Below, in pieces: positions 29,401 through 54,005 of a stretch of 64,000 bases of DNA. Position 1 is the first letter of the stretch. Every line of letters starts with the position of its first letter. Under the pieces are notes generated by a model. That model saw nothing but the letters and a program-made list of their open reading frames with translations. It did not search any database and was not told where the DNA came from. Position numbers and translations under genes: made by a program. The DNA is from Eutreptiella sp. 'Long Island Sound 2002' (Eukaryota > Protista > Euglenida): assembly GCA_964036045.1 (NCBI GenBank), contig OZ038378.1, positions 156,922,001 through 156,986,000 of the forward strand, written 5' to 3'.

Positions 29401-31917
29401 AGTGGCACTATTAGAGGCCTTCTCTTCCTTAGCTCATTGGAACCGCCTCGGAAAGGCGGTTTCATTGATTGGTCACAACCCTCGGTGATTCTGTTGTTCG
29501 CGGTGATTAATCTACAAATTTGATGATTTCCTACATGCCCCAGGGATATCAGCAGATATCCGGGGCATATGACCCAGGATATCACCGCTGCTGTATCCCG
29601 GGTCATATGCCCCGGATATCTGCGGATATCCTCGGGCCCATGCCCCGGATATAAAGTGGTGCATACATGTGGTGGAAGGGGCTAAACTCGGTCAAAACGG
29701 GCTCAAAACGGGCTAAAAACACTTGTTTGAGCATCCCAAATGGTCCGGGATCACTTCAAGAAAAACGCGTTTTTGACCCATTTTTGACCCATTTTTAGTC
29801 CCAAAATGGCCCATTTTCAAGGCATTTTGGGAGTTTCCAGGAGCCAAAACCCGTCGCCACGGGCTCAAAATGGGCTAAAAACACTTGTTTGAGCATCCCA
29901 AATGGTCCAGGATCATTTTTGGAAAAACGCGTGTTTGACCCATTTTTGACCCATTGTTGGTCCCAAAACGGCCCATTTTCAAGGCATTTTGGGATTTTCC
30001 ATGGCCCAAAACGCGCCACCACGGGCTCAAAATGGCCCAAAAAACACTTGTTTGAGCATCCCAAGTGGTCTAGGAACAACTTTGGAAAAAATCAATTTTT
30101 TCGCCCCGGGGACCCTGGTGGACCCACCGTTGGCCCCCACTGTGCGTGGGCTAGCCGGCCCTCCGGCTGCACCAAGTGACCACTGGTACGGGGGTCTACG
30201 TGTCTCGTTCGGCGATTCTGAGGCTTGGAAACCATAAAAAGTGGGGGGTTGCGGGTGGACTAGGTGCCCTCAGAATTCGTTTTTGAGCCACGTAGCCCAA
30301 GATACGGCCCGTTCTTGGTTTCGGGGTGCTGGTGCACATTGCGCAGTTTTTGGGGCTTTTTGGCGCCTTTTTGGGCCGTTTCTCGGACATATCGTGGAGT
30401 TAGAGGGCACCAAAGGTCCCTTGGTCGCGAGAAAGTCAAGCCGCACGTGCAGTGTACCAGCCGTTTGCCTTCGTTTGGCTGTTTTTGCACCCTTACTAGG
30501 GCTGTTTTGGGCGAAAAATGGCTGTTTTTGGCCCAAAACTGCGCAGATTTGGGAGGGCACCTCCCGACTTGGCGCCACCGCCCCGGGCCGCCACCGGTGA
30601 GTTTTTGGCTCAAAACTTGGATTTGGCAAGGCCACCACCTAGGCTCTAGGATGGCTAACGTAGGGTCAAGCCCGAGGCGATGGGAAGGTGCAGTGGCCAA
30701 AACGGAATGGTGACGTGTTGTTGTTGTTGTTGTTGTTGTTGTTGCTTGTTGCTTGTTAGCTAAATTTAAGGGGAGAGGGGTGTAGTAATATATCCTCTAA
30801 TCTACACCCCTCTCCCAACTCTAGGTGGCTCCACCATACGGCTCTAAGGTACAGGCGAAGGGTACAACTTGGTGCATACACGTGGCGGAAGGGGCTAAAT
30901 GCGGTCAAAACGGGCTCCAAATGGTCTCTAAACACTTGGTTGAGCATCCCAAATGGTCCAGGATCACTTTTGGAAAAACGCGTTTTTGACCCATTTTTGA
31001 CCCATTTTTGGTCTTGAAACGGCCCATTTTCAAGGCATTTTGGGATTTTCCATGGCCCAAAACGCGCCACCACGGCCTCAAAACGGGCCAAAAACACGTG
31101 TTTGAGCATCCCAAGTGGTCCGGGAACAACTTTGGAAAAAATGATTTTTTTCGCCCCGGGGACCCTGGTGGACCCACCGTTGGCCCCCGCCGTGCGCGGG
31201 CCGGGCTGCCCTCCGGCTGCACCAAGTGACCACTGGTACGGGGGTCTACGCGTCTCATTGGGCGATTCCGAGGGGTGGAAACCAGGAAAAGTGGGGGGTT
31301 GCGGGTGGACTAGGTGCCCTCGGAATCGGATTTTGAGCCACGCAGCCCAAGATACGGTCCGTGCTTGGTTTCGGGGGGTTGGTGCATATTGCGCGGATTT
31401 TGGGTCTTTTTGTCATGGCGCCTCTTTGGGCCGTTTCTTAGACATATCGTGGAGTTAGAGGGCACTAGAGGGCTCTGTGAGACGTCGAAGTCAGGCCGCA
31501 CGTGGAGTGTAGCCATCGTTTCCCTTCGTTTGGGCGTTTTGCCCGGGTTTGGGGGCTATTGTGGGCGAAAAATGGCTGTTTTTGGCCCAAAACTGTGCAG
31601 ATTTGGGAGGGCACCTCCCGACTTGGCGCCACCGCCCCGGGCCGCCACCGGTGAGTTTTTGGCTCAAAACTTTGATTTGGGCACCACCTAGGCTCTATTA
31701 GGATGGCTAAAGTAGAGTCGGGCCCGAGGCGTTGGGAAGGTGCAACGGCCAAAACGGCATGGTGACGTGCTTGTTGCTTGTTGCTTGTTGTTAGCTAAAT
31801 TTAAGGGGAGAGGGGTGTAGTAATATATCCTCCAATCTACACCCCTCTCCCAACTCTAGGTGGCTCCACCACACGGCTCTAAGGTACGTGCAAAGGGCAC
31901 AAAGTGGTGCATACACG

Positions 31918-32726
31918 TGGGGGGGCAAAGTATGCTTCGAAGGTGAAGCTATGGGCCTCATGGTTTTGCATGGATGGCGGGGATGAACAGGCTTTTTTGA
32001 GAAGCCTGGACATCTCCGCCAACCTCAACCAAGAGGTGAGGGATGTGGAGGAGGACGTTGTCCTCTTTCAAAACCAATTTTTGACTTGCACTGTCATTTT
32101 GACAGGGGATGGGAAGGGGATGCAAGCAATGGGGGGGGCTGGGTCTAAGTGTTGGTTGTGCAAAGACCCCAATGGTATTGTTGAGCAAAGGGGGGTGGAG
32201 TCCACCTCAAGATGGGGGGCATTCTTGAGAAGTGTGACCCCTGATAGGCGGCCGGGGGACTACCAACATGCAGCATGCCGCATCCTAAACGGCATTGCAA
32301 AGCACATTGAGACCACCCTTCAGGCCCTCCCCCCTGGTACCCGTGGTAAGGCCCAAGCTCTTGCAGCTTTGCAGGCCTTCAAACAAGCCCTCAAGGATGA
32401 GACCTCAGGCATCCCTCTGAGGGAACGTCTCCCCTCAGCCTCAAGGGCCACAGAAAAAGATTTCGATCTTACAAGCACCAAATTTTTCCTAACCTCCCCC
32501 CCCTTCCAAAGGCAATTTGTGGATTGCCTCAAAGAGCATGTCCCCACAGTGAGGACCCCTGGGGGACCTCTGTTATGGGTTGTTGTGCATGTCATGGTGA
32601 AATGCATTGAGGGTTTGTATGAGCTTTGGAGGGTGAGGGAGATGTACACTCTAACCCAAGTGGAACGCCACCGTGCGTTGACCACAAAAATTTCAAAAGC
32701 GTGGGGAGACTCAGGTTGGTCCCCCA
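31918..32726 (+). pseudogene. Captured internal fragment of the RAG1/Transib-like transposase
   Basis: Inverted near-identical copy of 35581-36391 (11 aa differences over about 270 aa); lacks the first catalytic D and the E. Confidence 0.9.
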
Positions 32727-33991
32727 TCCTGAAGTGGCGTGTAGTTTTTGCCTTTTCGGGTGTAGCGTTGCAGAGCTTCGCCAAGCTGTGCGGTCGGACA
32801 CTGCGGCTGCTACTGAATGAGTTGTATGCAAGTGTTCACATTACATCCATTGCCCTGCCGGTGATGATGGGAGTGAGAGACTTGGTACAGGCAGTAAGCA
32901 GGATTCAGACATCCAGATCACGCGTGGAGCCCATAGAGATTGATATTGATGATATGTATTGGGAGCTTGGGAAGGACACATGCATGGACGCAATACGTTT
33001 TGCCATACGTATTAATTATTATTATTATTATTATTATTAATACAGCGCGTGAGTCCAGGCGTGAAAAGGTGATGACTTTTGCGCTACACAAGGGAGGTGA
33101 TAAAACGTTGGACCGTCTGGGAGGGTCGACGTCTGACGAATATCGAATCCTCACAGAGCGGGAGGTCCTGGACTTTGTACAGTGGGATCTCTTTCATAAT
33201 ACCATTGCGGTCATCGGCCGAATCATTTTGATGCAAGGCAAAAGGGGTGTCCCCATTGGAGGACACCTGGCAGGCCTCATTGCAGAGCTCTGGGCTATAT
33301 ATAACTATATGTAGCTGTATAAGCTGTAGCTGTATATAAACTGTAAAATATAGGTATTTCCTCACATTTCATGCACAAGGCGTAGCAACAACACAGTGCA
33401 CAAGTACAAGCAAGTTGAATGCTCTCGACATGGAGTTGACCAGGAGTTGGCGAATGTACAGTATCTGGGGTTGGCTTCGTAGTTACATATATGCAGAGCA
33501 TCGTGCGTTTGCGACCGAATCCGAATCACGCAGCGAGATACAGACAGCATGGCAGGCAGGGGTTGAGGGCCTGAAGCTGGGGAAGAGAGTGGAGGTAGTG
33601 CTGCCCGGAGCGGAGGTATTTATGTGCATGCATGACGCATCATCACATCAATTGCTGGGGGACATCTTGGCCTCAAAAAAGCGTCACACAATAGGACTAG
33701 AGGATGTCCAAAGGGCAGGCCTGAAGGGTTGGTGGTCGCCAGCAGACAGACTTCTGGCCTGGGTGACCATCGAGAACCAAGATGTACCGATATTGGGGAT
33801 TGTGCCGTGGGATTCAGCTCCTAGGGGGAGAACACATCATATACTCCAGCGCACGCCATGGAGAGACATTGAGCGGGTTCGAAATTTTTTGTCACAGTTC
33901 CACCCGTCAGATTTTCTGATGGGGGAACTAGGGTAGAAATCGACACCAGCAGAGCTGCAGGGACCATGTGTGCTCCTGGCCAGGTTTAGGG

Positions 33992-34546: not shown

Positions 34547-35109
34547 GTGTCGAGAGAGCACAGGGAGCAAGGAAAGGGCGACAGTGGTGAAACACGCACA
34601 GCACGAGGGCCAAGGGAGGCGGGCCGGGACAAACCCGAGGGCGCAGCACACACACATGTGGAAGTCAGGGAGGGAGTGGCCTGGCCGCCAGCCGAGGGCC
34701 CGGGTACATGCAGTGTGTGTAAGTCAGTACGAGAGATGCCCAGAGCAGGACAGCGAGGTACGGAGAGTATGTCCTGCACGGAGCACCCAGCGAAGCCTTC
34801 ATGGGATGTACATAATAGAGCGATCACATGTGATGTTTGGTGCATGCCACAGTGATGCAAGTAGGTGTGTAGAAGTCATACGCAAGGGATCAGCGAGTAA
34901 GAGGGCAGAGGACCCCAACAAACACACAGACGTGTGTGGGATGCAGCGTTCTAGGGCGTGGTGCGGAACCCCTAGTTAGAACGCAATTTCTGGAACACCC
35001 ACCTACCCTCAATTTTGGGGCAAACCACCTAAAAAAATGGATTCAGCACCCTCAAAAACCCCCCATCCCCTTTCTTTCCCCACATAACCCGCATCATGGG
35101 GGTGGTTTT

Positions 35110-35245
35110 TGGGGGGGGGGTCAAAGAGTTAGAGCACAGTTAGAACAGAGTTAGAACGCAGTTAGAGCACCTTGCTCTAACTAGTTATCGCGCTAGTTAT
35201 CGCGCGATAACTCAGTTATCGCGCAGTTATCGCGGGTAGTTATCG
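35110..35245. repeat. GTTAGAGC / GTTATCGCG repeat array (mostly opposite orientation to the other arrays)
   Basis: Repeated TAGTTATCGCG and GTTAGA(G/A)C units downstream of the transposase. Confidence 0.85.
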
Positions 35246-35317
35246 CGCACCCCTCCTCCATCCCTCACTAGGACAAACAACACAAAACACTTGGCACAAA
35301 GCATCTGTGGTCGTTTT

Positions 35318-36976
35318 TCATACAAAGTCATCAATGTCTGAGGCCTTGGCTGCCTCCAGTCCCAAAAGCCCTTGCTCCAGGGCGTTCATGGACATGCAAT
35401 GGTGCATGTGGCGGAGGGACATACTTGGCCTCACCAAAGACCAACCCTTAAAACAATTTTTGAGCCTCCTCTTGTAAGGCCCATGCCGATACTCCGTTGG
35501 GATGGAGGAAAACTGAAAAATGTTCCTCCATTTCTCGGCAAAAAAGGTGGAATGTGCCAAGCACCAATGGATCCACCTGGTGGGGGACCAACCTGAGTCT
35601 CCCCACGCTTTTGAAAATTTTGTGGTCAACGCACGGTGGCGTTCCACTTGGGTTAGAGTGTACAACTCCCTCACCCTCCAAAGCTCATACAAACCCTCAA
35701 TGCATTTCACCATGACATGCACAACAACCCATAACATAGGTCCCCCAGGGGTCCTCACTGTGGGGACATGCTCTTTGAGGCATTCCACAAATTGCCTTTG
35801 GAAGGGGGGGGAGGTTAGGAAAACTTTGGTGCTGGTTAGATCGAAATCTTTTTCTGTGGCCCTCGAGGCCGAAGGGAGGCGTTCCCTAAGAGGGATGCCT
35901 GCGGTCTCATCCTTGAGGGCTTGTTTGAAGGCCTGCAAAGCTGCAAGAGCTTGGGCCTTACCAGGGGTACTAGGGGGGAGGGCCTGGAGGGTGGTCTCAA
36001 TGCGCTTTGCAATGCCGTTTAGGATGCGGCATGCTGCATGTTGGTAGTCCCCCGGCCGCCTATCAGGGGTCACACTTCTCAAGAATGACCCCCATCTTGA
36101 GGTGGACTCCACCCCCATTTGCTCAACAATCCCATTGGGGTCTTTGCACAACCAACACTTAGACCCAGCCCCCCCCATTGCTTGCATCCCCTTCCCATCC
36201 CCTGTCAAAATGACAGTGCAAGTCAAAAATTGGTTTTGAAAGAGGACAACGTCCTCTTCCACATCCCTCACCTCTTGGTTGAGGTTGGCGGAGATGTCCA
36301 GGCTTCTCAAAAAAGCCTGTTCATCCCCGCCATCCATGCAAAACCATGAGGCCCATAGCTTCACCTTCGAAGCATATTTTGCCCCCCCCCATACATTAAC
36401 CCATACATCCGCACGGGTAGAGGATGCCTTCCACAAGGAAGTCGCATCAACTGAAATAACAATAATGGCAACGCCACTAGGGGGGGGTTTCCCAATAACT
36501 CGGGCCATAGATATTGCATTTTGCACAATTGATTGCAAAGGCACATGGGCAGCTGCCCTATTGCGGCCTGTGGTAGACTTTACAATGGTGGTTTGGGGAA
36601 AGTAGGGCATGATCCGTTGCCGAACGGTCCTTAGGTCCCGTTGTGTGCAACGGCGGGGCATTCGCAAAAGGGCCCGTTGGGAGAGATGCATGCTGCATGC
36701 CATGCGTAGCATGCTCAGGGCCTCATGCTCCTGAGCTGTTAATGCAAGATGGCCGCCAAGTGGGCCAGACAGGGCAGTGCACGCCCCACCACTTAAACAA
36801 ACTTCGCCTTTGGTGTTGGTGCCACACACGACGTCTGGGTCACCCAATAGAACTCGCACCAGCCGCTGAACCGCCTTCAAACGCCGCCGCCGGGCCTTGG
36901 GGCACTGCAGATCGGTGTACCGCCGCAGGTTGGCTGTGTTGAGAGCCCGCAGGGCCTCATTGACAGCATTGTCCAT
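35318..36976 (-). CDS. DDE transposase, RAG1/Transib/CMC-like (552 aa from ATG 36976)
   Basis: IIVISVDA (D177), VILTGDGK (D260), CWLC (C2C), PGDYQH, W.HWCLAH (H4H), SSIPTEYRH (E495). D-E spacing is 235. Acceptor cgcccag| at 36992. Confidence 0.8.
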   Translation of the reverse strand: MDNAVNEALRALNTANLRRYTDLQCPKARRRRLKAVQRLVRVLLGDPDVVCGTNTKGEVCLSGGACTALSGPLGGHLALTAQEHEALSMLRMACSMHLSQRALLRMPRRCTQRDLRTVRQRIMPYFPQTTIVKSTTGRNRAAAHVPLQSIVQNAISMARVIGKPPPSGVAIIVISVDATSLWKASSTRADVWVNVWGGAKYASKVKLWASWFCMDGGDEQAFLRSLDISANLNQEVRDVEEDVVLFQNQFLTCTVILTGDGKGMQAMGGAGSKCWLCKDPNGIVEQMGVESTSRWGSFLRSVTPDRRPGDYQHAACRILNGIAKRIETTLQALPPSTPGKAQALAALQAFKQALKDETAGIPLRERLPSASRATEKDFDLTSTKVFLTSPPFQRQFVECLKEHVPTVRTPGGPMLWVVVHVMVKCIEGLYELWRVRELYTLTQVERHRALTTKFSKAWGDSGWSPTRWIHWCLAHSTFFAEKWRNIFQFSSIPTEYRHGPYKRRLKNCFKGWSLVRPSMSLRHMHHCMSMNALEQGLLGLEAAKASDIDDFV

Positions 36977-37039
36977 GAAGAATAAGAGGACCTGGGCGCG
37001 AAATGAGGGAGGGTTTTGAAGCAAGGGCCCAAAAAACAC

Positions 37040-37230
37040 ACGCGATAACCCACGCGATAACCCCCGCGATAACTAGGTTATCGCGCGATAACCCCCGCGA
37101 TAACCCCCCGCGATAACTAGTTAGAGCGCGATAACCCCCCGCGATAACTAGTTAGAGCACCCAGTTAGAGCGCGATAACCCCCGCGATAACTAGTTAGAG
37201 CAGGGGTTAGTGCGCACTAACTGGTGGTGT
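37040..37230. repeat. CGCGATAAC(TAGTTAG) array upstream of the transposase acceptor
   Basis: About 9 CGCGATAAC units. Confidence 0.9.
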
Positions 37231-37465
37231 TAGAGCAAGCGTTGGGCACCCTAAAACCTTCACAAACGTTGATTTTGCACCCAGGAAACCTTGGAGATGT
37301 CAACAATGTGCAGGCACGGGGTACATGGCGCCACAATCACAAATTCAAATCAGTCACACAGTCTTTTGGATGATTTGGATAGGGTGCCTCTCAAATCAGT
37401 CAAGTCAGTTGCCCCTCCTCAGAGTCCACAGAGTACAGTAATAGAAATAGTGAACAATAATCGAA

Positions 37466-38101
37466 TCAGCTGGAGGGGTTAGAGGAAGCATTGGGCACCC
37501 TAAAACCCATGGACAGCAGCTGCTGCCGCCACACAGGCGTGCAGTGCAGAACCCCCCCCGCACTATAAAAAATCACGCTCCATCGCTCGCCCTCCCATGG
37601 CAATGGAGCGTGTAGTGCCCTGGTGTTGAACAACACCGGGGCTTGGGGGGTGGCGGTGCATGCCCAACCCTCCACCGCCCTACCCTGGCACACACGGGTG
37701 TGCCGCTTTTTTTCCCTCAAGGAGGGATTCAGCAGGCCACCACTCTCCACCCAAAACTCACCCCCCGTGAAAGACCCCACACACACAATAAGCGCCATGG
37801 GCGCCCCATCCCGCAAATGGGAGTGGAGGCCCATGGTGTCCGTCCCTTGGGGGCGAACAATTTGGATGCTACACCATGTGAACCATGGTGGAGCATTGGA
37901 GGTGCAATACCCATTGAGGTCTGCTACCAAGGGGGTGAGGGCAGGCCTGAGGGTAGCAGCGGCCATGTGGGTCGCCCTAAAATTAGAGGGGTTGGGGTTT
38001 CCACTTCCCACGAGGCCAAAGTGGCACATGTCCACTTGGGCCCCATATCGCTCCTCCCCACGAAAAATGCCCTTGGGCAACCCCCTGAGCAAATCCACTA
38101 G
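37466..38101 (-). CDS. TET/JBP-like 2OG-Fe(II) dioxygenase domain (in frame behind the UGA of the upstream ORF)
   Basis: WCSIQI...MGLHSHLRDG...ALIVCVGSFTGGEFWV...PVLFNTRALHAPLPWEGERWSVIFYS, i.e. the G.F.GG.l, F....H and GeR.s..fy signature. No ATG near the start. Confidence 0.75.
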   Translation of the reverse strand, partial: LVDLLRGLPKGIFRGEERYGAQVDMCHFGLVGSGNPNPSNFRATHMAAATLRPALTPLVADLNGYCTSNAPPWFTWCSIQIVRPQGTDTMGLHSHLRDGAPMALIVCVGSFTGGEFWVESGGLLNPSLREKKRHTRVCQGRAVEGWACTATPQAPVLFNTRALHAPLPWEGERWSVIFYSAGGVLHCTPVWRQQLLSMGFRVPNASSNPSS

Positions 38102-39310
38102 TCATTGGCTCCCACTCCTACTCCCGCTACCCTGACTCTGCAACCCTTGCGGCGCCAGCCCCTGCTGGGCCTGCTGCGCCCCGAAGGAGGCACAGAGGGT
38201 GGAGGTGAGGCTGCGCACCTGCGCCTCAGCCACCCCCAAGCGCTGCCCAAGGTCATCCCCCCTCCTCCGCTGCCCCTCCACCTCCACCCTAAGCTGGGCC
38301 ACCTCCACCTCCGCCTTCCGCCTCCCCTCCTGGGCCTCCCTCAGGGCCTCCCTCATCGCCTCCACCTCCTCCCCCCTCTTGGCGGCCAGGTTGAGGGCCT
38401 GGTCCAGGGCACGCTGGGTGTTGCCCTGGGCCTTTTCGGCCTTTGCCAAGGCCGACCTGTGGTCGGCCGACCGACCCTTGGCCAGTGCGGCCTCGACCCC
38501 CGTGGCGGCCGCCTGCTCCACCAAAACCTGGCAAGCGTCCGTCACGTGGGTGGCCACACTGGCCCCCAAGGCCTCCACGTCCAGGGCCTCATGGGGGGGC
38601 TGGGCTGCCGCCACCTTTGCCACCTTCGATGGCTTGGGGGAGGGCTTGGGGGCGGGGGTTTGGCCCTTACCCCTAAGGGGGGGGGGGGCATCCGGCTCAA
38701 CCACCACCACGTCTGGTCCCCGCTTCGTCTGGCCTTTTCCCGGCCTTCCCCCCTTGGGTGCATACTGCCGAATCCATTCGGCAGTGGCGTCCGCCACAGA
38801 AGGGGGGGGGTCATACCCACCAACCTGGTGGATGTCCCCCCCCCTGTGCAGCTTCTGCCACACTTCCCTCCCCGTATACTCCCCCTCCCACAAAAAACAC
38901 ACCCTCAAAAGGAAATAAGATTTCCTTTGGGGGGGGTCGCTCATCCCAAACAAACACAAAAAAGCCGCAACCGTTTCCCCCTCTGCGGCTTGCGGCCACT
39001 TGGCCGTTTCCCCCCCAACCCACACATAGGAGGGGAGGGTGAGGTTGGTCTTCCTCTCCACCCCCCCCTCCTTCTCTGTGATGGTGACCTGCCGGTACCA
39101 TCCCGTCCCCCCCATCCTGCAGGCCTCATCCCCAGGCTCCCCAAACCGCCACGACGCCCCCTCCGGCAGCCTCTTCTCCCCCTCCAGCTCCAACCGGGCC
39201 GCCACCGGCTTGGCGGGCCGTGCCCCCGCTGCTGCTGCCGCTCCGCCCGCTGCGTCGGCTGCCTGGGCGTCGTCCTTGACGAAGATGCGGGGCAGCTGCA
39301 AGATGGTGGC
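38102..39310 (-). CDS. Uncharacterised domain plus coiled coil; probable exon 2 of the dioxygenase polyprotein
   Basis: Strong acceptor (T-rich tract + TTTCAG| at 39311), no initiating ATG, in frame with the donor at 39553. Heptad-rich ALAKAEKAQ...AEAQVRSL. Ends in TGA CTA G. Confidence 0.75.
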   Translation of the reverse strand, partial: ATILQLPRIFVKDDAQAADAAGGAAAAAGARPAKPVAARLELEGEKRLPEGASWRFGEPGDEACRMGGTGWYRQVTITEKEGGVERKTNLTLPSYVWVGGETAKWPQAAEGETVAAFLCLFGMSDPPQRKSYFLLRVCFLWEGEYTGREVWQKLHRGGDIHQVGGYDPPPSVADATAEWIRQYAPKGGRPGKGQTKRGPDVVVVEPDAPPPLRGKGQTPAPKPSPKPSKVAKVAAAQPPHEALDVEALGASVATHVTDACQVLVEQAAATGVEAALAKGRSADHRSALAKAEKAQGNTQRALDQALNLAAKRGEEVEAMREALREAQEGRRKAEVEVAQLRVEVEGQRRRGDDLGQRLGVAEAQVRSLTSTLCASFGAQQAQQGLAPQGLQSQGSGSRSGSQ

Positions 39311-39344
39311 CTGAAAAAAACAAAAGAAACAAAAAAAAAAACAC

Positions 39345-39530
39345 GCGATAACCCGCGCGATAACCCCCGCGATAACTAGGTTATCGCGCGATAACCCCCG
39401 CGATAACCCCCCGCGATAACCCCGCGATAACTAGTTAGAACGCGATAACCTAGCGCGATAACTAGTTAGAGCACCTAGTTAGAACGCGATAACCTAGCGC
39501 GATAACTAGTTAGAGCAGGGGTTAGAGCAG
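39345..39530. repeat. CGCGATAAC array inside the predicted 243-nt intron (39311-39553)
   Basis: About 11 CGCGATAAC units plus TAGTTAGA units. Confidence 0.9.
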
Positions 39531-39553
39531 GGTGTTGTGGGAGGTTTTCACAC

Positions 39554-41677
39554 CTGGTGACATGGACACATGCCTTGGCCCTCCTTCTTGGCGTCGTCCA
39601 GCACCAGGCCCAGCCTCCGCAGCCACACGAAGTCCGTGACGGCCGCATACTCCCCCACCTGCCGCCACTCCACCACCTGGGCCACCCCCTCCGCCTCAGG
39701 GGCCACCCTTGCCACTCCCCCATACAACCCCCTCCTCACCACCAAAATGGTGCCCGCCGGCACCTTCATCCCAACATGCCCTTGCAGGGTGGGCCAGGGC
39801 AGTGCCTCCCCATGGCACACCTTGGCCAAGGGGCACTGATCGGGGTGGCCTGCGACCGCCCCCGCCTCCTCATTAGTGAGGGGGGCAATCACCTCCCTCC
39901 CAACCCCCCACCCCGACAACAAAAAATGCCCGGTGGTTGTTCCCACCGGGAGCAAGCACTGAGCAGATTGCTCAATGCTGACCCCATTGGGGTCCACCAC
40001 CACCTCCTCCTCCTCCCCCCCCTCCACCTCCTCCCCCTCCTGGCATGGCACACAAAGGCCATCTTTGTGGGCGGTGCACAAAATCAGCCGATTGCATCCG
40101 TAGCAATTGGCTACCACCTTCCCCCTACACCTAACCGCCCCATCACACTGGACTGTCCTGGCCACCCGGCCACCAGGTGCCCCCAGCTGGGGCCTCTTAA
40201 TGGACTGGGTCACGTGCAGGTTGGGGAATCGAAGATTCCCCCCCACGGTAAGCTCAATGGCAAAAAATGCCATGAGGCGGGGGTGGGACACCCCCGTGGG
40301 GGAGGCCTTGGGAATCCCCGACCCCCTGTGGACATCAAGGGCATTAAAAAAAAAGGCAGTGCCCCTCTTGAATGGCACAGCCCTCTCCACCCAAGGGTCA
40401 GGGAACCCCGAACTGCTGGAGGGCACAAAAAGAAAATGTGACCCATCCTCCTCCTCATGATTATGGGTTAGCATAATAAGGCAATTGACAATCAATGTGC
40501 CTTCAGGAATGGTGTAGGGGGGGGCGTCGCGATGGAGGTGCTGGGGGGTGTGGTCATAGCTCGAAATTTCGGCCATGTCAAGGATGGTGCAGCTCCATCC
40601 AACCCCCCCCACCACAGTCTTCTTCGCCGTCTCAAGCACACGATCTGCCACCCTTTTGAGGACTGGCAGATCATGGAGCTTGTGGGGGTTGTGCCTGTGG
40701 TGGTTGGCACCCCCATAGTTGCCGTACAATGTACGGCGGGTCCCAGAATCTTGGGGCCTGCCGACAATGGGGGGGTTCTCATTGAAAATGGGTGCCTTCT
40801 CTGAGAGAGGCACCCTATCCAAATCATCCAAAAGACTTTGGAGCTGCACAGCACTCAAAAAATCGTGCTCCAGGAGGTGGTTGACCACCAGCTTTCCCCC
40901 CACCGTTTGCACAAGGTCATTGGGGTCCCTATTAAAGGCCCCCAAGGGCTCGGCGGCAACCACCTCCTCCGCCTCCCCAATAAGGGGGGGTGTTGCCCCA
41001 AATGGAAAAAGAATCACCCCCTGCCCCGCAACAATGTTGGGAGTGGTGACCCCATACCACTCACGCTCCCACTCCCTTGTGGGGCAAAGGGAGTGCATGG
41101 GGAGCTTGTTTTCGGGGTCGTCAGTGCAGACCCGGCGGGTGTTGTGGGTGAGGGGTTGGGGGAACCAACCATCCGACTGCCCCTTCCCCTTACCCGGTCG
41201 GATCCTTACCTTCTGGACACTAATCATGAGGGGGTTGTGGGGCTTCTCCTTCCTCCCCCCAGCCCCCACCCCCCCCGCATCCTCCTCCTCCTCCTCCACT
41301 TCCTCCACTTCCTCCTCCTCCTGACCCACATAGAGGGTCGTCTTCGTCCCCGCACCCTTCTCGGCATGGGCGGTGACGGACTCCACCACCGCGTCCACAT
41401 CGTCCGGATGAAGCTGGATCAAAAATCCAGCAACCCCTGGATTTACCTCTAGCAACTCGAAGATGTAGTTGCTGAGAACCAGGGGGTCTCGGTTGTCCGC
41501 CATGAAGGGGGACTTATGGACAAGGAGTCCAAAGTCCACACCATGTTCAAAGCGGGTCGCCACAGGGCGCCTCACATTGGCATCACCCATCGTAAACCCC
41601 TCAGGACCGCCAAGGCGACGGACCCCAAGGAGCTTTTGATGGTGCTCGCACCAAGCGTGGGCAGCAGCAAGGGCCAT
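39554..41677 (-). CDS. PhyH-like 2OG-Fe(II) dioxygenase + B-box-like Zn finger protein (exon 1 of the predicted polyprotein)
   Basis: QHLHRD (HxD), GTAFFFNALDVHRG (distal His), HPRLMAFF (Arg), then C..C...CYGC...LCTAH...CVPC. ATG 41677 lies 27 nt after a polypyrimidine-AG. CAG|GTGTGA donor at the end. Confidence 0.8.
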
Positions 41678-41734
41678 TATCAAAGAATATGAAAGTTTTG
41701 AGAGCTAAAGCGAAAAGGGGAAACATAAAATGAA

Positions 41735-41882
41735 GCGCGATAACCCACGCGATAACCCACGCGATAACTAGTTATCGCGCGATAACCCCCGCGATAACCC
41801 CCGCGATAACTAGGTTATCGCGCGATAACCCACGCGATAACTAGTGCTCTAACCCCGTTCTAACCCCGCGATAACTAGTTAG
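41735..41882. repeat. CGCGATAAC array upstream of the first acceptor
   Basis: Includes the perfect palindrome CGCGATAACTAGTTATCGCG. Confidence 0.9.
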
Positions 41883-42259
41883 AGCACACAAAGATCAAAT
41901 CGCAAAAAGTGCAAAACGGGCAATATCGAGCAAACGAAACATGGAAGGCACATTGTTGCATCATAGTGCACCCATGTAACATGTGAAATTCCGGGTTCCA
42001 ACCATATTAACAACACCCAAAATTGGGGGGGTTCCGCACCACGCCCTAGAACGCTGCATCCCATGTGCACATGGGCGAAGGGAGCCAGAAAGAGCGAGGG
42101 CCGGGACAGGTCAGGGCAGCATGGGCACAATTCTGAGACGGCGGAGTCATAGCAACAATTTTCATGTAATGACGCAGCTAACCCCATAAGCGCACAGTGC
42201 ACTGTCCTGCTACTTGCTTCCCAGCTTTTCGGAGTATGCTCTGCTGACGACGGCTTTCT

Positions 42260-44332
42260 TTGTGCGCGTATCTGCTTAGTCCTCTAGCACCCCGGAGACT
42301 ATGCAGAACTCTCGAAGAGATACATGCGGTGGAGGACCTCATACTAGGGAAGAGATTTGTGGTATGGGGGTGGGGAGAATCCGAGAGAACAGCCAAAGCG
42401 GTGGCGCTCGACGAGATCCTGGAACGAGCCAGAAAGGGGGGGATCCTGGAGCTTGCCACAGCGCACAACCTGGGACACCCCCAACACAATACACAGGATA
42501 TGTGTCGCACAGCGCTTCTGAATGACCTACAGACGAGAGAGAGCACAGGGCGAGAGGAAGGGAAGCAGGACAGGACGCCGGAGACAGTCCCGAGCGGCGG
42601 TCAGGCACGGCGCCGCACCAAGAACGCCAGGTACCACCCCCTCCCACCCAGAGCCTTCTCGATCATGAAATGGAAAACAGATGTATTCAGGATACCACCA
42701 CTGGTGAAGTGGAGGGATGTCTTTGCATTTACATCAGTGGTGGTACAAAGTTATGCGAAGCTGGTAGGGAGATGTCTCAGACTACTGCTTGGCGAGATGT
42801 ACGTTACCCTAGACACACTGGCGTTGCCAGTTATGCTAGGGGTCAGAGATGTGGTGCAAGCAGCCCGCAAAATTCAGCCAGACAGAACGAAAATGCATCT
42901 GCATGAGGCGGACATTGATGATATGTACTGGGAAATATATAAGGACGAATGCCTGCAAGCAATCGATTTGGCTATCAGCAAAGTACGAAAGATGAGACGA
43001 GAAAAATCACTCACATTTGCGCTACACAGGTCGGGAGATAAATCACTGGATCGAATAGGCTCATCAGTGTGTGACGACTTTTATCTTCTGACGGCCTCTG
43101 AGGTCAGCAAATTCGTGAGTTGGGATTTGTTCGAGAATACCATTGTAGTGTATGGCAGGCTTATCCTGCAACAAGGGCTGCGAGGAGTCCCCATTGGGGG
43201 CCACCTGACAGGCCATTGTGCAGAGCTATGGGCCTGTGTTCGGGAGCATATTGCTTTTTCAGTGACTTCTGAGGACAGACGGGACAGACAGGAAGCCTGG
43301 CAAGCAGAGGTGAACCACCATAACACGGTCTTACAGCCGGTTGTAACACTGCCAGGGGCAGACACGTTTGTCAGCATGGAGAACACACAGAGTGCGGACC
43401 TGCTGGGGGACATCTGGGCAGCCAAGGACAGATACAGGGCTCGCCCTGAGGACGTTCGACAGCAGGGCCTGGGGGGTTGGTGGAACCCCTCCCTCAGACT
43501 GCTAGCCTGGATGTCAGCCCGTCAGACCGATATCCCCATCCTGTCAACTACCCTGTGGGACTCGGCGCCAGGAGGGCGGGTTCAGCATATCCTGCGCCAG
43601 ACCCCCCGGCGAGACGTAGAAAGGGCACGTGACTTCTTGTCACAGTTTGCCCCCTACGAGTTCGTCCTGGCAGAGTTCGGCGTGACGACCCCACAGACAG
43701 ACCTGATCTATCCCTGTACCCTCCTGGCCCGGTTTCGGGACAATATCTACATTTTTTTGATGAACATCCCAGATGAATGGAGAGCGGACGTACTAACCTG
43801 CGTGATGGCTCTCCTAAAGACCATCTACAATGTTTCACTGAAATGGGAGGTGCACGGCCCTACAATGGAATGGTGCGAGTGTGCCATACCACCCACAGGG
43901 CGTCTGCGGCTCCTTCGTAAAGGTGTTGTTCTGAACCTCACCAGTGATGACCTGTGGTGGCGGGAATGGGATCGGTGGTTGCCAGCCACGGCGCCGAACG
44001 CGGGAAAAGTCATCAAGGGACAAATGCCAGCCCTCATGCAAAAAAGTCTATGGTATGCGCTGTCATGGCAGGACGTCCATGACAACCTGCGATCACTTTT
44101 TTGGGGTTTGGGCTTTCACGCATACGCCGTGGCATGGTGGATGGCGCCAGCGAACCGATTCCTGAACGCCAACGGCCTGAGGGGACGTTTTCCTGAAGCC
44201 CTGGTTGACCAATGGTATAAACAGGGCAGAGAGAGGGGGATGGCACTGCGGGAAAGACACACAGAACCCCATGATGCCAGAGCTACAGGACACCGAGCAC
44301 ACGGGGAAGAGGACAGCCATACGAGGGTATGA
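42260..44332 (+). CDS. Endonuclease-less Penelope-like reverse transcriptase, copy A (open 690 codons, 5' end uncertain)
   Basis: Motif A EADIDDMYWEI, motif B' QQGLRGVPIGGHLTGHCAEL, motif C LLARFRDNIY (F at 43733), followed by a thumb-like region. No GIY-YIG, APE or RNase H recognised. Confidence 0.8.
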   Translation: MCAYLLSPLAPRRLCRTLEEIHAVEDLILGKRFVVWGWGESERTAKAVALDEILERARKGGILELATAHNLGHPQHNTQDMCRTALLNDLQTRESTGREEGKQDRTPETVPSGGQARRRTKNARYHPLPPRAFSIMKWKTDVFRIPPLVKWRDVFAFTSVVVQSYAKLVGRCLRLLLGEMYVTLDTLALPVMLGVRDVVQAARKIQPDRTKMHLHEADIDDMYWEIYKDECLQAIDLAISKVRKMRREKSLTFALHRSGDKSLDRIGSSVCDDFYLLTASEVSKFVSWDLFENTIVVYGRLILQQGLRGVPIGGHLTGHCAELWACVREHIAFSVTSEDRRDRQEAWQAEVNHHNTVLQPVVTLPGADTFVSMENTQSADLLGDIWAAKDRYRARPEDVRQQGLGGWWNPSLRLLAWMSARQTDIPILSTTLWDSAPGGRVQHILRQTPRRDVERARDFLSQFAPYEFVLAEFGVTTPQTDLIYPCTLLARFRDNIYIFLMNIPDEWRADVLTCVMALLKTIYNVSLKWEVHGPTMEWCECAIPPTGRLRLLRKGVVLNLTSDDLWWREWDRWLPATAPNAGKVIKGQMPALMQKSLWYALSWQDVHDNLRSLFWGLGFHAYAVAWWMAPANRFLNANGLRGRFPEALVDQWYKQGRERGMALRERHTEPHDARATGHRAHGEEDSHTRV

Positions 44333-45828: not shown

Positions 45829-47996
45829 AATGTCCTGAACACAAAAGTGGCAGGCCGACAAAACCCGGGCGCAAGTGGGTCGAGAAGTGCACCACTTGCT
45901 TGTTTTGGCTTTCACTCAACACTCTATGCCCACCCTTGGTCTGGGGCCACCACCGTATGGTTTAATTAGGAGCCGTGCAGTGCTTGTGCTGTGGCTGTGC
46001 GTGGATGTCAAGGGCGCACGCTCATGCACCATGCCATGTTTGCCTCTACCAATCAATCTCAGTCCGCCACGAAGGCCGGTGCGAAGTGCGGAGTAAGAGT
46101 CAAACCCACACTCATTGAAAGTTTCATGGACAATTGCAGTAGGTGGGGTGTACCATGCGACAACAACATAGGGAGGCCTCCACGTCGGGCTATTGGGTCC
46201 CATCACTTGCACCGTGAGAAGTCCCAATGGTGGAGCACATTCAAGGGTCCAAAGAAACCTTGGCTCAATTGGGCACACGAGTCCGTTCCGTTCCGCATGA
46301 AATCCCGGAACCTAGCCCCCCCCCCCCCCCCCATCCAATTGTTCCACGGCTAGTCCCCGTGGACTCAAACCCAAAGCCCAACTGCTCATGTGGTGTAACA
46401 TGCAACCAAATGTAAGGGAATGATGAGTCTTGGTAAAAAAAAAAGTGAAAAACCGGCCTTTCTAAGGAGAGCAGTCACCGTGCACCATGGAAAGGGATGG
46501 TACGCTAAAGGATGAAATGCACGCCCCCCCCCCCCCACCTGAATCAACCTGTCAACCCAGAAACCTGGCCCAAAATTTTTTTTGAACCATGCAGTACAAG
46601 CAGTGTTTTGCCCCGTCTCGGTCCGTGTGTTTGGTATGGTTGTATGGGTTTGTATGGTTGAATGTGGCGGTGGAGTCGCCCTACGTATGCACCTAGATTT
46701 CCCAGTATGTGCAGCTGGAATAGCCTCTGAGACTTGCTCTGTGATGCTGTGTGTGCATTTCGGTCCTTGCTTGTTGTTTTGACGGCTTACCCCTGTCCCC
46801 CGATCATGTGGGGTCATGAAATGTATTATTGGTGTCCTGAAGCGTTGCATCTATGCAGAGGCATTACCTCAGTGGTACGACAGGGAGTGCCTTGAGAGGA
46901 CGCATGCCCACGGGGAGGATGGCAATGGCAAAGGAGTCCCCTCTAGGGCATGGGTCTGCCCGTTGTTTCCATCCCCTTCACCCCAAGACTTGGTAACCAC
47001 CCGAGTCCCAGGACCTCTACTCACCCACTATTGCGAGGGTGATGGGCAGGACAGGTACAGAGAATGGACACCTGAATTCCAGCCCGCCACGGTGCTCACA
47101 CACATGGTTAGCCAACCCTTGCCCCCAACACCTCCCACAGCGGAGGAGGGAAAGCTCATGAGAGAACACGATGTCTTGCACCCCGCTGACGACACCACAC
47201 AGGCATACTTGGAAATGCTATGCAGCACTCCCCTTGGCACTGTATTGCTATTCCTACTTTGTTCCTGCACAAACCCCTCGAAGATTCAGTATTGGGATGA
47301 CTGAACGTTAGGCTGCTAGTGTTGGTTGGTGAGGGCAGTATGCTGCAGTTGCGAGCAGTAGGAGAGGCATTCCACGCAACAGCAGGTGGCCCGAAATAGA
47401 CGTTTTCGTTTTCGCTGAGGACCGCTCTAATCAACCGATGGCCAATGAAAATTAGTTGACAGTTGGCTGGCAGCTGATGCTCAACGACGCCGAGCTGCTG
47501 CCGCTGCTGGTGCTGTTGCTGTTGAGGTTGCTACTGCTGCTGTTCTGGGTGCGATCTCAGGCACCTAATGGGAACAGAGGGGTTCTGAGATCCAAGGGGT
47601 TTGTGTCCCAAATATGACCAAGAAAAATTTCTTTTTTCTAAATTTTGACCCTCCCAAGAAATATTTTGTCACATCCCCACAGGAGCTGGTTGGCGGGCAT
47701 GATCGTTCCAAAGTATTCCTGGGGATTGGGGCAGGACAATACTTCAGGAAGTGGGGTATGTGAAACATATGAGCTGCTCCTGCTGTTGTTGACTCACAAG
47801 ATGGGTGGGGTGGGGCAGTGGCAAACACAAGGCGGTCGCAAACGCAGCTTACCAAACATGCTATTGCAACTCACTGATATGAAAAGTGCCCAAGAATACG
47901 AAAGGACATTCGGTAACGCAAACCAGTGTACCAAGAGCACCGAAGGAGCAAACGAGCGGCCAATCCTCCTTTCAGGTTGTTTCTTCTGTTCTGCCA

Positions 47997-49079
47997 ATGT
48001 CCAAAGTCCTCAGCAAATGGCCTGAGCTGGCTTTGAGTACACTGGGCTTCTTACCATGGCAGCACCTCTCGGATTGTGCCCCAGTGTGCAAGCTCTGGGC
48101 TAAAACCACCCGCTATCTGCTGGATCAGCCGCGGAAGGTCGCCTGCGCGTCACGCTCCACGAAGCAGGACCCTGAATTGTATACTTTCGTTGCGTCCCTT
48201 CCATTCCGTCCTGCATTTGCTTTTCTGCTTTGGAGCGGTCGTAAGGTGGCTCCCAACGTGCCTGAAATCCGGCAGCACTTGCCATACGACTGCCCGCTCG
48301 TGGCCGGCGAGACAGATGGCACCATTTGCTGCAAAACCCACAGTGCCAGTTTGGAGGTCCACGAAGTGGAGAGCGGGTCCTGTTGCACCCTTACGGTGTT
48401 TCCAGCGATGCCCGGGGTGGCGTACACGCCTTGGCGGTTGACGAAGGGCCATGCAGAAGGGCTAGAGGGCGACTTCAACCGCCCACTGCGGGCGTTGGTG
48501 TTCCTCTGCACCGAACACCGGTTCATCCCAAGTGTGCTGCAGCTGGTGCAGCAGTACCACGGCGGCGGTATCCATGTCGCTGGCGGAGTGACAGGCGCCA
48601 AGTTGTGGTTCAACGGAGTCAAGGAATCAAAAGGCGCCGTCGGGTTTGGCATTTGCGGTGATGTCCAGTGCGAGTCTGCCGTCGCCACCCGCATGGACAT
48701 CGACGTCCTCAAGGTGATGCCGCCCCTCAAAGCCGCAGTCGAAACCCCGACGTATGGCATGCTTTTCCCCTGCGTAGCCCGTGGGATGTCCTTGCACGAG
48801 GATCCAAATGTGGAGAGCAAAGCCTTCCTGTCGATGTTCCCTCATACCCCACTGACTGGCTTTTTCTGTCAGGGGGAGATCCACTACATCACCTCTGATG
48901 ACAGCCCGGATGCAGAAGACCTTGAAGAGGGCATGCACGCCTATTCTTCCGTTTTCTTGGTCTGGGGCCCATCACCTCAGCCCCGTGAGTATCGACATGG
49001 CCCCCTGCCTCCTTCTGGGTACCGATTGGAGGGCGGGCGCGTCGTTGTCCCTCGTGCGCTGAAGGCGCAGACCATGTGA
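47997..49079 (+). CDS. F-box + FIST domain protein (FBXO22-like), intronless
   Basis: N-terminal PELALSTLGFLPWQHLSDCAPVCKLW (F-box). FIST motifs VAGGVTG, AVGFGICG, GMLFPCVARG...Y/HE..NVES..F...FP..PLTGFFC.GEI, HAYSSVF. Acceptor cctttcag| at 47975. Confidence 0.85.
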   Translation: MSKVLSKWPELALSTLGFLPWQHLSDCAPVCKLWAKTTRYLLDQPRKVACASRSTKQDPELYTFVASLPFRPAFAFLLWSGRKVAPNVPEIRQHLPYDCPLVAGETDGTICCKTHSASLEVHEVESGSCCTLTVFPAMPGVAYTPWRLTKGHAEGLEGDFNRPLRALVFLCTEHRFIPSVLQLVQQYHGGGIHVAGGVTGAKLWFNGVKESKGAVGFGICGDVQCESAVATRMDIDVLKVMPPLKAAVETPTYGMLFPCVARGMSLHEDPNVESKAFLSMFPHTPLTGFFCQGEIHYITSDDSPDAEDLEEGMHAYSSVFLVWGPSPQPREYRHGPLPPSGYRLEGGRVVVPRALKAQTM

Positions 49080-52610: not shown

Positions 52611-54005
52611 TCAGCAATGGCCCAGCATTAAAGGGCATAGGTGCAGACCCAACACAAGAGGGACGACAAAGAGCAGGCAGACCAAAAAAAGAGCAAGGTG
52701 TGAACACAAATGGACGGGCGCAACGGGGAGGAAAACGGGGGTAGGGGCACAGAAAAGGAGGAAAACAACGCAATAGGAGCCGGAGAACCTAGCGGTTAAA
52801 ACCCAAAGGGGTTTGCTGCTCGGGGGAGGACGTCCGGGTAAGGACACGCAGTCAAACGCGGGAGCACGGAGCATCACGCGTGTAACAAAAACAAGAGCGG
52901 TCGCAGAGTCAGAGCCAATGAACCCGGTGGTTAGATCTCCCCAGTGGCTGGGGGGTGCATCACACAGGGGAGGACGTCCATGCCCACCGATCTATGAGGC
53001 TTGCATTGCACAGGCAATGGGCTTTATAGGGAGGGTAAGCATAAAAGAATCATCTCATATCCAACACATGATGGTTACCTGGGATTACTCTTGTGGGGAT
53101 ACCGGGGGGATCACCATGGATTGCAGTACGGACACGTGTGTGTGGACGGACGCCCCATGGTACTCCGCTAGGCTCCCCGCTAGGGCGCCCAGGAACCCAG
53201 CTTCATGGGGCGCAGTCCTCCAGATGGTCTCCTGGGGAATGTGTCTTTCACCCATGCAAGCACAGCAGTATGCGGAGGTGGAACGCAGAGGATGAGTCGA
53301 AGGTCCGTCACGTGACCAGCCTTCGGCGCAGTGGACGGCCAATTACCGTACACTAGTCCTCCTCCTCCTCCCCCCCCTGAATGGGCTGCACATATCTTTC
53401 CAACCATACAACACATCTCAGTTGCCTGGTCTCTTGATGGAGAATTCCCAACTTTCGTACCTTGCAATATGTTCATCAGGCGAGATATGCACAAACAAAT
53501 TGTCATAAGAAGCAAAGTACGCACCACGTTTTCATGTGGTTCCTCAAAATCTCCCATTCTCTACTCTAACTACTTGAGATGGAACTTCATGGCTCCAAAC
53601 AAAACATTGGTGGTTTTCCCTTGAAAAAACTTGGCAACAACGTGTCCATGACAACCATGGGTTAGCACAAGCTTTACGTGTCCACAAAATGCAATACGCA
53701 AACCTTGTCCTGTGTTGTTGCTGCGTGTGCTGTCGCTGGGCAAGCGCTGCTGCTGCTGCATGGGGCCCAAGAGCAGGTTTGCATGACCTTTCTCATCATG
53801 TGTCTGCCCCAAGGGATGAACGGGGTGTGGCAGGCGAGGTGCGAATCTGACGGCATTACTGAAGTGCACATCGTGCCATGCAGCTCTGAACGCCTGGCGG
53901 AAGTACACTTTCTCGGGCCTTTGTCAACTGTTGGGTGTGTAAATCTCTGTGATTCCTGTTTCTGTGCTTCGTGCTTGCAATATCCGCTTCTTCTCTGTGC
54001 AGACA

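Follow-up and report, generated by a model that had tools for sequence, protein, structure and literature searches.

Contig OZ038378.1 of the euglenid Eutreptiella sp. 'Long Island Sound 2002' (assembly GCA_964036045.1) carries, within the 64-kb stretch analysed here (positions 156,922,001 to 156,986,000 of the forward strand; the window), an intact and young copy of an autonomous cut-and-paste DNA transposon of 7,127 bp (~7.1 kb; 34937-42063 of the window). Besides a predicted DDE transposase, the element encodes two different oxygenase domains of the 2-oxoglutarate (2OG)- and Fe(II)-dependent type, and, as judged from three deeply diverged families in the same genome, the accessory oxygenase gene is a long-standing core component of this transposon lineage. 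An original prediction, made from the sequence of the window, had proposed an intact autonomous transposon with two such domains, and the terminal inverted repeats (TIRs), open reading frames (ORFs), target-site duplications (TSDs) and further copies reported below bear this out on both counts. We regard the structural part of this account as highly probable, and give the whole, that is the structure together with a mechanism of base oxidation, a probability of about 0.6.

A young transposon with 2-bp target-site duplications

The features of the element are collected in Table 1. Its perfect 36-bp TIRs, already recognised in the original prediction, give it 5'-TG..CA-3' termini (TGGGATG...CATCCCA), and the identical TIR is found at the ends of copies in loci L001-L006, L009 and L011. 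The prediction had also read the sequence TGTG as a 4-bp duplication. TGTG does flank both ends of the window copy, but all nine TIR-bounded copies have matching 2-bp flanks (TG, CA, CA, AG, TA, AG, TA, AT, CA), and a match at the third base occurs in none of the nine, the accidental 4 bp of the window copy excepted. With a 2-bp TSD in nine of nine copies that differ in their flanks, the longer match in the window is therefore due to chance.

Table 1. Features of the transposon, numbered by window position; arrays are numbered in gene orientation.
Feature	Position	Strand	Description
5' TIR (gene orientation)	42028..42063		36/36 complementary to 34937-34972; terminus TGGGATGC
3' TIR	34937..34972		partner of 42028-42063, perfect 36 bp
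TSD, 2 bp (TG)	42064..42065		partner 34935-34936
Array 1 (5' subterminal)	41735..41893	-	~9 x GTTATCGCG, 16-bp palindrome GTTATCGCGCGATAAC, GCTCTAAC motifs, ~12-bp spacing
ORF A	39548..41683	-	711 aa: acidic linker, PhyH-like domain, Cys/His zinc cluster, beta-rich C-terminal domain
PhyH-like 2OG-Fe(II) oxygenase domain (inferred)	40274..40864	-	residues 274-470; H384-x-D386, H452, R469
Putative intron, 243 nt GT..AG	39311..39553	-	contains array 2; excision would fuse ORF A to ORF B in frame
Array 2	within 39311..39553	-	11 x GTTATCGCG
ORF B	38102..39301	-	399 aa: N-terminal domain of unknown function, Pro/Lys-rich linker, coiled coil (~240-375), Gly/Ser tail
In-frame TGA between ORF B and ORF C	38102..38104	-	context CAA-TGA-CTA-G; candidate programmed readthrough site
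ORF C, compact 2OG-Fe(II) oxygenase domain (modelled fold)	37466..38098	-	210 aa
Array 3	37040..37250	-	10 x GTTATCGCG, 5 x GCTCTAAC
ORF D, predicted DDE transposase	35318..36976	-	552 aa from ATG (573-aa open frame)
Array 4 (3' subterminal)	35125..35250	-	same motifs, opposite orientation to arrays 1-3

Hundreds of copies of the family are present in the same genome, and its proteins group in clusters with 174-491 members each. Identity is 98.5-99.7% for young copies and 87-95% for older ones, and the family has been active recently. Internal deletions whose break points are scattered have produced several of the copies, among them a 2.2-kb derivative that retains only a truncated transposase ORF, which belongs to a cluster of 174 member sequences.

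Three diverged families keep the oxygenase gene

Relatives of ORF C at 30-34% identity led to further families within this genome. In family 2 (loci L008-L011) the TIR is 18 bp long (TGTAACTGCTAAGATCTG), the ends read TGTAAC...GTTACA and the TSD is AT; a 731-aa ORF1 is followed by ORF2 (302 aa, coiled coil), an in-frame TGA, an oxygenase of 188 aa and a transposase of 559-678 aa. Family 3 (L013) follows the same order, with 26% identity in ORF A, 30% in ORF C and 40% in the transposase, so that one gene order is common to three families with only 19-40% protein identity. Measured against diverged copies, the ratio of nonsynonymous to synonymous substitution (dN/dS) is 0.37-0.51 for ORF A, 0.25-0.79 for ORF B, 0.36-0.53 for ORF C and 0.28-0.33 for ORF D, with bootstrap intervals that exclude 1 for ORFs A and D and mostly for C. 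Since every copy drifts neutrally once it has inserted, selection on the active lineage is stronger than these ratios suggest. Because three diverged families keep the architecture and dN/dS lies below 1, the oxygenases are core components of the element.

Could the oxygenase ORFs instead be passenger host genes, captured once and without function for the element? DNA transposons do capture host gene fragments, and many copies lack the oxygenase ORFs through internal deletion, as in the 2.2-kb derivative. The scattered break points, however, are those expected of ordinary non-autonomous derivatives, and the families keep both the gene order and the in-frame stop at levels of identity that exclude recent recombinants. 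With the catalytic residues conserved as well, and every ORF below a dN/dS of 1, we reject a one-off capture: a passenger origin is largely refuted and most improbable. The original prediction had asked whether the oxygenases were such a one-off capture and whether the ORFs evolve neutrally; what we find is regular cargo under constraint.

The families also nest in each other: in L009 (10346-17427) a full copy of family 1, 99.5% identical and flanked by the TSD AT, lies inside a family-2 transposase gene.

The compact oxygenase domain of ORF C

An exhaustive HMMER search retrieved 170 relatives of ORF C, and an AlphaFold model built with 40 relatives aligned reaches a predicted local distance difference test score (pLDDT) of 90.9. 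Foldseek with this model gave 122 matches in the PDB at E<=0.001, and nearly all of the best 50 of these 122 are 2OG-Fe(II) oxygenases, with AlkB, CcTet, TET2, ALKBH and JBP2 at the top. On the strength of the model, the fold is with certainty the double-stranded beta-helix (DSBH) of a 2OG-Fe(II) oxygenase, and the domain is a candidate for the nucleic-acid-modifying (AlkB/TET-like) type. Its putative metal- and 2OG-binding residues are H92-x-H94, H163 and R172, the arginine lying in an R-W-S-V-I-F-Y strand. In an atlas of protein-language features the neighbours of ORF C include Tet_JBP clusters and clusters with a TET-associated glycosyltransferase domain. Among 40 relatives, two match Tet_JBP, at E 0.096 only, and one ORF C relative matches 2OG-FeII_Oxy_3 at 2e-5; PDB sequence and profile searches with ORF C, the family profile and a profile of the HxD subgroup found nothing.

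Distant relatives of the domain carry the motifs H-R-D-x-H-N and Y-H-A-T, which we take to resemble those of TET enzymes and treated as a lead only, not as a test. These relatives form part of proteins that also contain a reverse transcriptase, a zinc knuckle and an aspartyl protease, and the AlphaFold DB neighbours of ORF C, at template modelling (TM) scores of 0.65-0.79, are named Copia or Pol polyproteins. The unusual HxH metal site, and the wide occurrence of the domain in retrotransposon polyproteins from other protists, point to a clade of mobile-element-borne oxygenases that has gone unrecognised; it looks widespread and has no Pfam family.

Two of the relatives (P0104 and P0115), from other organisms, have an HxD-motif oxygenase within Copia-like polyproteins (RVT_2, zinc knuckle, aspartyl protease). 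In the same genome, further families (L012 9001-9777, L015 9001-9645 and L014 9001-9606) encode an oxygenase 29-38% identical alongside other partner ORFs, which are 39-43% identical between L012 and L015; near these oxygenases no transposase of the CACTA/Mirage/Chapaev/Transib-RAG1 (CMCT) type is detectable. Other types of element may also carry the ORF C-type domain.

A probable PhyH-like oxygenase domain in ORF A

The Pfam family PhyH (PF05721) aligns with residues 274-454 of ORF A over 192 of 213 profile positions (E 0.011), 2OG-FeII_Oxy_3 gives E 0.077, and PhyH accounts for 58 of the 100 nearest atlas clusters. The residues H384-x-D386, H452 and R469 are conserved in the first ORFs of the three families, at 19-28% identity. 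From the sub-threshold Pfam match, the conserved residues and the atlas neighbours we infer that ORF A carries a PhyH-like oxygenase. The original prediction had called it a PhyH-like dioxygenase with a zinc finger: the Cys/His cluster (residues 513-550) is common to family 3 and thus kept in a second family, while the PhyH assignment stands on the match and the residues just named. A comparison by hhalign finds the oxygenase domains of ORF A and ORF C unrelated. A PDB sequence and profile search with ORF A found nothing, and a word-indexed homologue search returned same-genome copies only.

A probable two-gene organisation

The original prediction described four uninterrupted co-oriented ORFs. 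All four are indeed open on the minus strand (711, 399, 210 and 573 aa), but they probably constitute two genes, judging from the sequence: gene 1 for an accessory polyprotein (A-B-C) and gene 2 for the transposase. At the end of ORF A lies a putative splice donor, CAG/GTGTGA, and after array 2 an acceptor, ...TTTTTTTCAG/GCC (T-tract-CAG), and most copies retain the two sites. No ATG is conserved at the start of ORF B, where the first codon is TTG, CTG or ATG depending on the copy, and a separate cistron is therefore unlikely. Splicing would join ORF A to ORF B. The coiled-coil segment listed in the prediction is confirmed in ORF B (Pfam ATG16, E 0.022; SMC/DndD coiled-coil models of NCBIfam, E 5e-4), and the atlas features of ORF B point weakly toward plant Transposase_28 (0.88).

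ORF B and ORF C share one frame and are split by a TGA only. This codon is present in all copies, young and old (88-99% identity), and recurs as TGA-CTC in family 2, with CT directly 3' of the TGA in families 1 and 2. CAA-UGA-CUA-G is a leaky stop context. ORF C would be made by low-level UGA readthrough, giving much A-B protein and little A-B-C protein. RNA structure past the UGA is not significant in the window copy (z -0.5).

In a family-2 locus (L009 8926-9051), 126 nt starting just 5' of the TGA fold better than shuffled sequences (z -2.7, 2/200). A candidate spliced-leader sequence was not found in the window or the loci. Of the words sampled from the element, about a quarter are present in two estuary metatranscriptome runs (X1 and X2), with the greatest depth over the 5' end and the arrays, and samples of this kind contain the organism or one of its close relatives.

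The transposase

The 552 aa of ORF D equal the length of the commonest predicted protein in the transposase family, whose clusters hold 275 and 174 member sequences. Its catalytic pattern reads D177, D260, C274-x2-C277, H470-x4-H475 and E495. When ORF D is aligned with the family-2 transposase (20% identity), both Asp, the H-x4-H and the Glu columns stay aligned, the Glu falling 20 residues past the second His, and the Cys-x2-Cys of family 2 is shifted a few residues further on. The spacing of 20 presumably equals that of RAG1. The nearest atlas neighbours of ORF D are RAG1 fragments and Transposase_21 (CACTA) and Plavaka clusters (0.93), and the predicted model of the nearest cluster resembles Transposase_21 and Plavaka (TM 0.72-0.77). 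Motif pattern and protein-language features thus support a predicted DDE transposase with the D, D, C(2)C, H(4)H, E pattern of the CMCT group.

Mirage elements have a 2-bp TSD. In the CMCT group TSDs range from 2 to 5 bp (PMC12730594), a range that includes the 2 bp of this element. The more specific RAG1/Transib assignment of the original prediction went too far, the CMCT motif pattern and atlas features being the part that stands: we reject a Transib/RAG1-type transposase on the 2-bp instead of 5-bp TSD, the termini TGGGATG...CATCCCA instead of CAC...GTG, and the missing profile match. Compared with ESTA/Mirage-like elements, the 2-bp length agrees, but the dinucleotide varies (TG, CA, AG, TA, AT) where ESTA has TA. 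PDB searches with a two-family transposase profile and with the family-2 transposase found nothing, and word-indexed homologue searches with the transposase alone and with the two-family profile returned same-genome copies only.

Palindrome arrays and CpG sites

Each family has one perfect CpG-containing palindrome of its own: GTTATCGCGCGATAAC, ACGCGTACGCGT and GTATACGGCCGTATAC. The arrays of families 1 and 2 lie at four corresponding places: subterminally at the 5' end, in the gap that separates ORF1 from ORF2, in that between the oxygenase and the transposase, and, inverted, subterminally at the 3' end. Three of them were found in the family-3 copy, which is truncated. Array 1 is followed by a pyrimidine tract and AG and then by ORF A, array 3 by a pyrimidine tract and AG that lies 15 nt 5' of the transposase ATG, and the same arrangement is seen downstream of the inspected arrays that precede coding regions in families 1 and 2. 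Two subterminal arrays in inverted orientation are likewise found in CACTA elements, and subterminal arrays of short motifs together with a second encoded protein parallel the TnpA/TnpD arrangement of En/Spm. The arrays would bind a dimeric DNA-binding protein encoded by the element, either the transposase or the accessory protein.

CpG dinucleotides occur at 0.55-0.61 of expectation, and, when copies are compared, transitions are 2.4 times as frequent at CpG as at other C/G sites, which gives a hint of some cytosine methylation.

What might the oxygenases do?

The functional reading that the data support best is that the element carries an oxidase for its own DNA, which either counters silencing or licenses sites; we hold this tentatively, at clearly less than even odds. 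The oxygenases would oxidise a modified or unmodified base (5-methylcytosine, 5mC, or T), most plausibly in the CpG palindromes, and this oxidation would counter methylation-type silencing by the host or leave the binding sites in a usable state. For Euglena, both heavy CpG methylation and base J have been reported (PMC12455990), and TET/JBP homologues of dinoflagellates make 5-hydroxymethyluracil (5hmU), which is enriched on repeats (PMC11572971). In a stronger form, which we think distinctly unlikely, the element would be a self-contained epigenetic switch: the oxygenases would write or erase a base mark on the palindromes (5mC oxidation, or T to 5hmU toward base J), the state of the arrays would gate the element's own DNA-binding protein, its expression and its movement, and UGA readthrough would set the enzyme dose.

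Several results weigh against our account, in its structural as well as its functional part. ORF C has no match to Pfam Tet_JBP (PF12851) at E<=10 and no Pfam, NCBIfam or PDB profile match; its fold is equally close to AlkB, NgTet1 and prolyl hydroxylases, and since it has HxH and not HxD, it may not perform the canonical chemistry of 2OG hydroxylases. For ORF A, the PhyH score of 16.4 bits lies below the gathering threshold of 22, and the AlphaFold2 model, from an alignment of 13 sequences, is unusable (pLDDT 26). ORF D matches no Pfam family at E<=1, including the RAG1, Transposase_21 and Plavaka profiles, no NCBIfam profile, and no RAG1/Transib entry among PDB sequences or profiles at E<=10; TG..CA termini are also atypical for CMCT elements. 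The CpG signal is modest, transversions at CpG being raised likewise. Finally, public contigs that fall on the element (two metatranscriptomes and two organism runs) have very high copy depth and yielded no usable splice, leader or readthrough joints. Of the TET/JBP-like dioxygenase in the original prediction, the DSBH 2OG-Fe(II) fold was upheld by the structure search, and the narrower attribution to TET/JBP was not.

As the fold of ORF C is as near to prolyl hydroxylases as to TET and AlkB, its substrate could be protein or RNA. The oxygenases would then act on chromatin or silencing proteins, on the transposase or on RNA bases, and would still aid expression or transposition. We consider this unlikely, though it is the alternative to be taken most seriously: the top Foldseek/VIA matches, among the matches listed, are mostly AlkB, ALKBH5, FTO, TET2, NgTet1, CcTet and JBP2, relatives of ORF C sit within retrotransposon polyproteins, and its atlas neighbours include the Tet_JBP and TET-associated glycosyltransferase clusters mentioned above.

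A different possibility starts from the metal site. HxH replaces HxD in the ORF C domains of all five in-genome families, whereas distant relatives have H-R-D-x-H-N, and the domain sits behind a stop codon; ORF C might thus be altered or inactive and kept as a nucleic-acid-binding or reader module, leaving the PhyH-like domain as the sole enzyme. Yet the second His (H163) is nearly invariant and the column of the 2OG-binding Arg invariant, the dN/dS of the ORF indicates constraint, and three histidines can still bind iron, as is known from other cupin-fold oxygenases. An inactive ORF C therefore appears improbable, a little more so even than the switch described above.

The two oxygenase domains have been passed on stably in three or more deeply diverged families, along with the arrays and the stop codon, and a long-term selected role of oxidation in the transposon's life cycle is thereby open to direct test: young, intact copies and defined motifs are available, and at 210 aa the compact domain lends itself to expression.

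Relation to known transposons

Transposons with base-oxidising enzymes have so far been documented in fungi, where DNA transposons of 11 lineages, CMCT lineages included, carry TET/JBP genes, with escape from methylation-based silencing as the proposed role of this cargo (PMC12730594). The original prediction knew of no such element; TET/JBP genes in fungal transposons were already described, and what sets the present element apart is its structure and its host. As in the fungal elements (Kyakuja/Dileera/Zisupton, Plavaka, EnSpm, ESTA and others), a 2OG-Fe(II) oxygenase resembling the nucleic-acid type lies inside the TIRs beside a transposase, and EnSpm, Plavaka and ESTA belong to CMCT, the group to which we assign this element. 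ESTA in particular has transposases that are RAG1-like by HHpred and 2-bp TSDs (PMC12730594). Here, in contrast, the host is a protist and the transposon lineage a different one; the compact oxygenase falls outside Pfam Tet_JBP, has HxH, and is accompanied by a second, unrelated PhyH-like domain in what is probably the same gene. Any dinucleotide can form the TSD, where ESTA has TA, and the ends read TG..CA instead of CA..TG; a conserved in-frame UGA before the oxygenase and family-specific arrays, internal as well as terminal, are further differences. In fungi TET genes move between transposon lineages (PMC12730594), whereas here the module is stably inherited in one lineage. A literature search linking Euglena with JBP or dioxygenase and transposon found no paper.

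With CACTA/En-Spm, Mirage and Transib the element has the D, D, C(2)C, H(4)H, E pattern and a short TSD in common; it differs from them in lacking profile similarity, in its TG..CA ends, in having arrays also between genes and in its oxygenase-bearing accessory protein. From the enzymes NgTet1/TET2/JBP and AlkB/ALKBH5/FTO, ORF C is set apart by an identity of only 8-16%, the lack of a profile match and the HxH of its first metal motif.

Neighbouring sequences

An Rfam scan of the window gave no match. Some 2 kb to the left of the element and in opposite orientation, a 378-aa ORF (31904-33040, plus strand) includes an 808-bp fragment of the transposase gene (31919-32726, 97% identity); no TIRs were found with it, and this second copy is truncated or rearranged. 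Directly to the right of the element lies a 690-aa ORF (42260-44332, plus strand) with no Pfam match at E<=0.01. Two ordinary-looking host genes follow on the plus strand, one with FIST N and C domains (47886-49079; E 5e-5 and 2e-7) and one with a PP2C phosphatase domain (53949-56327; E 2e-42).

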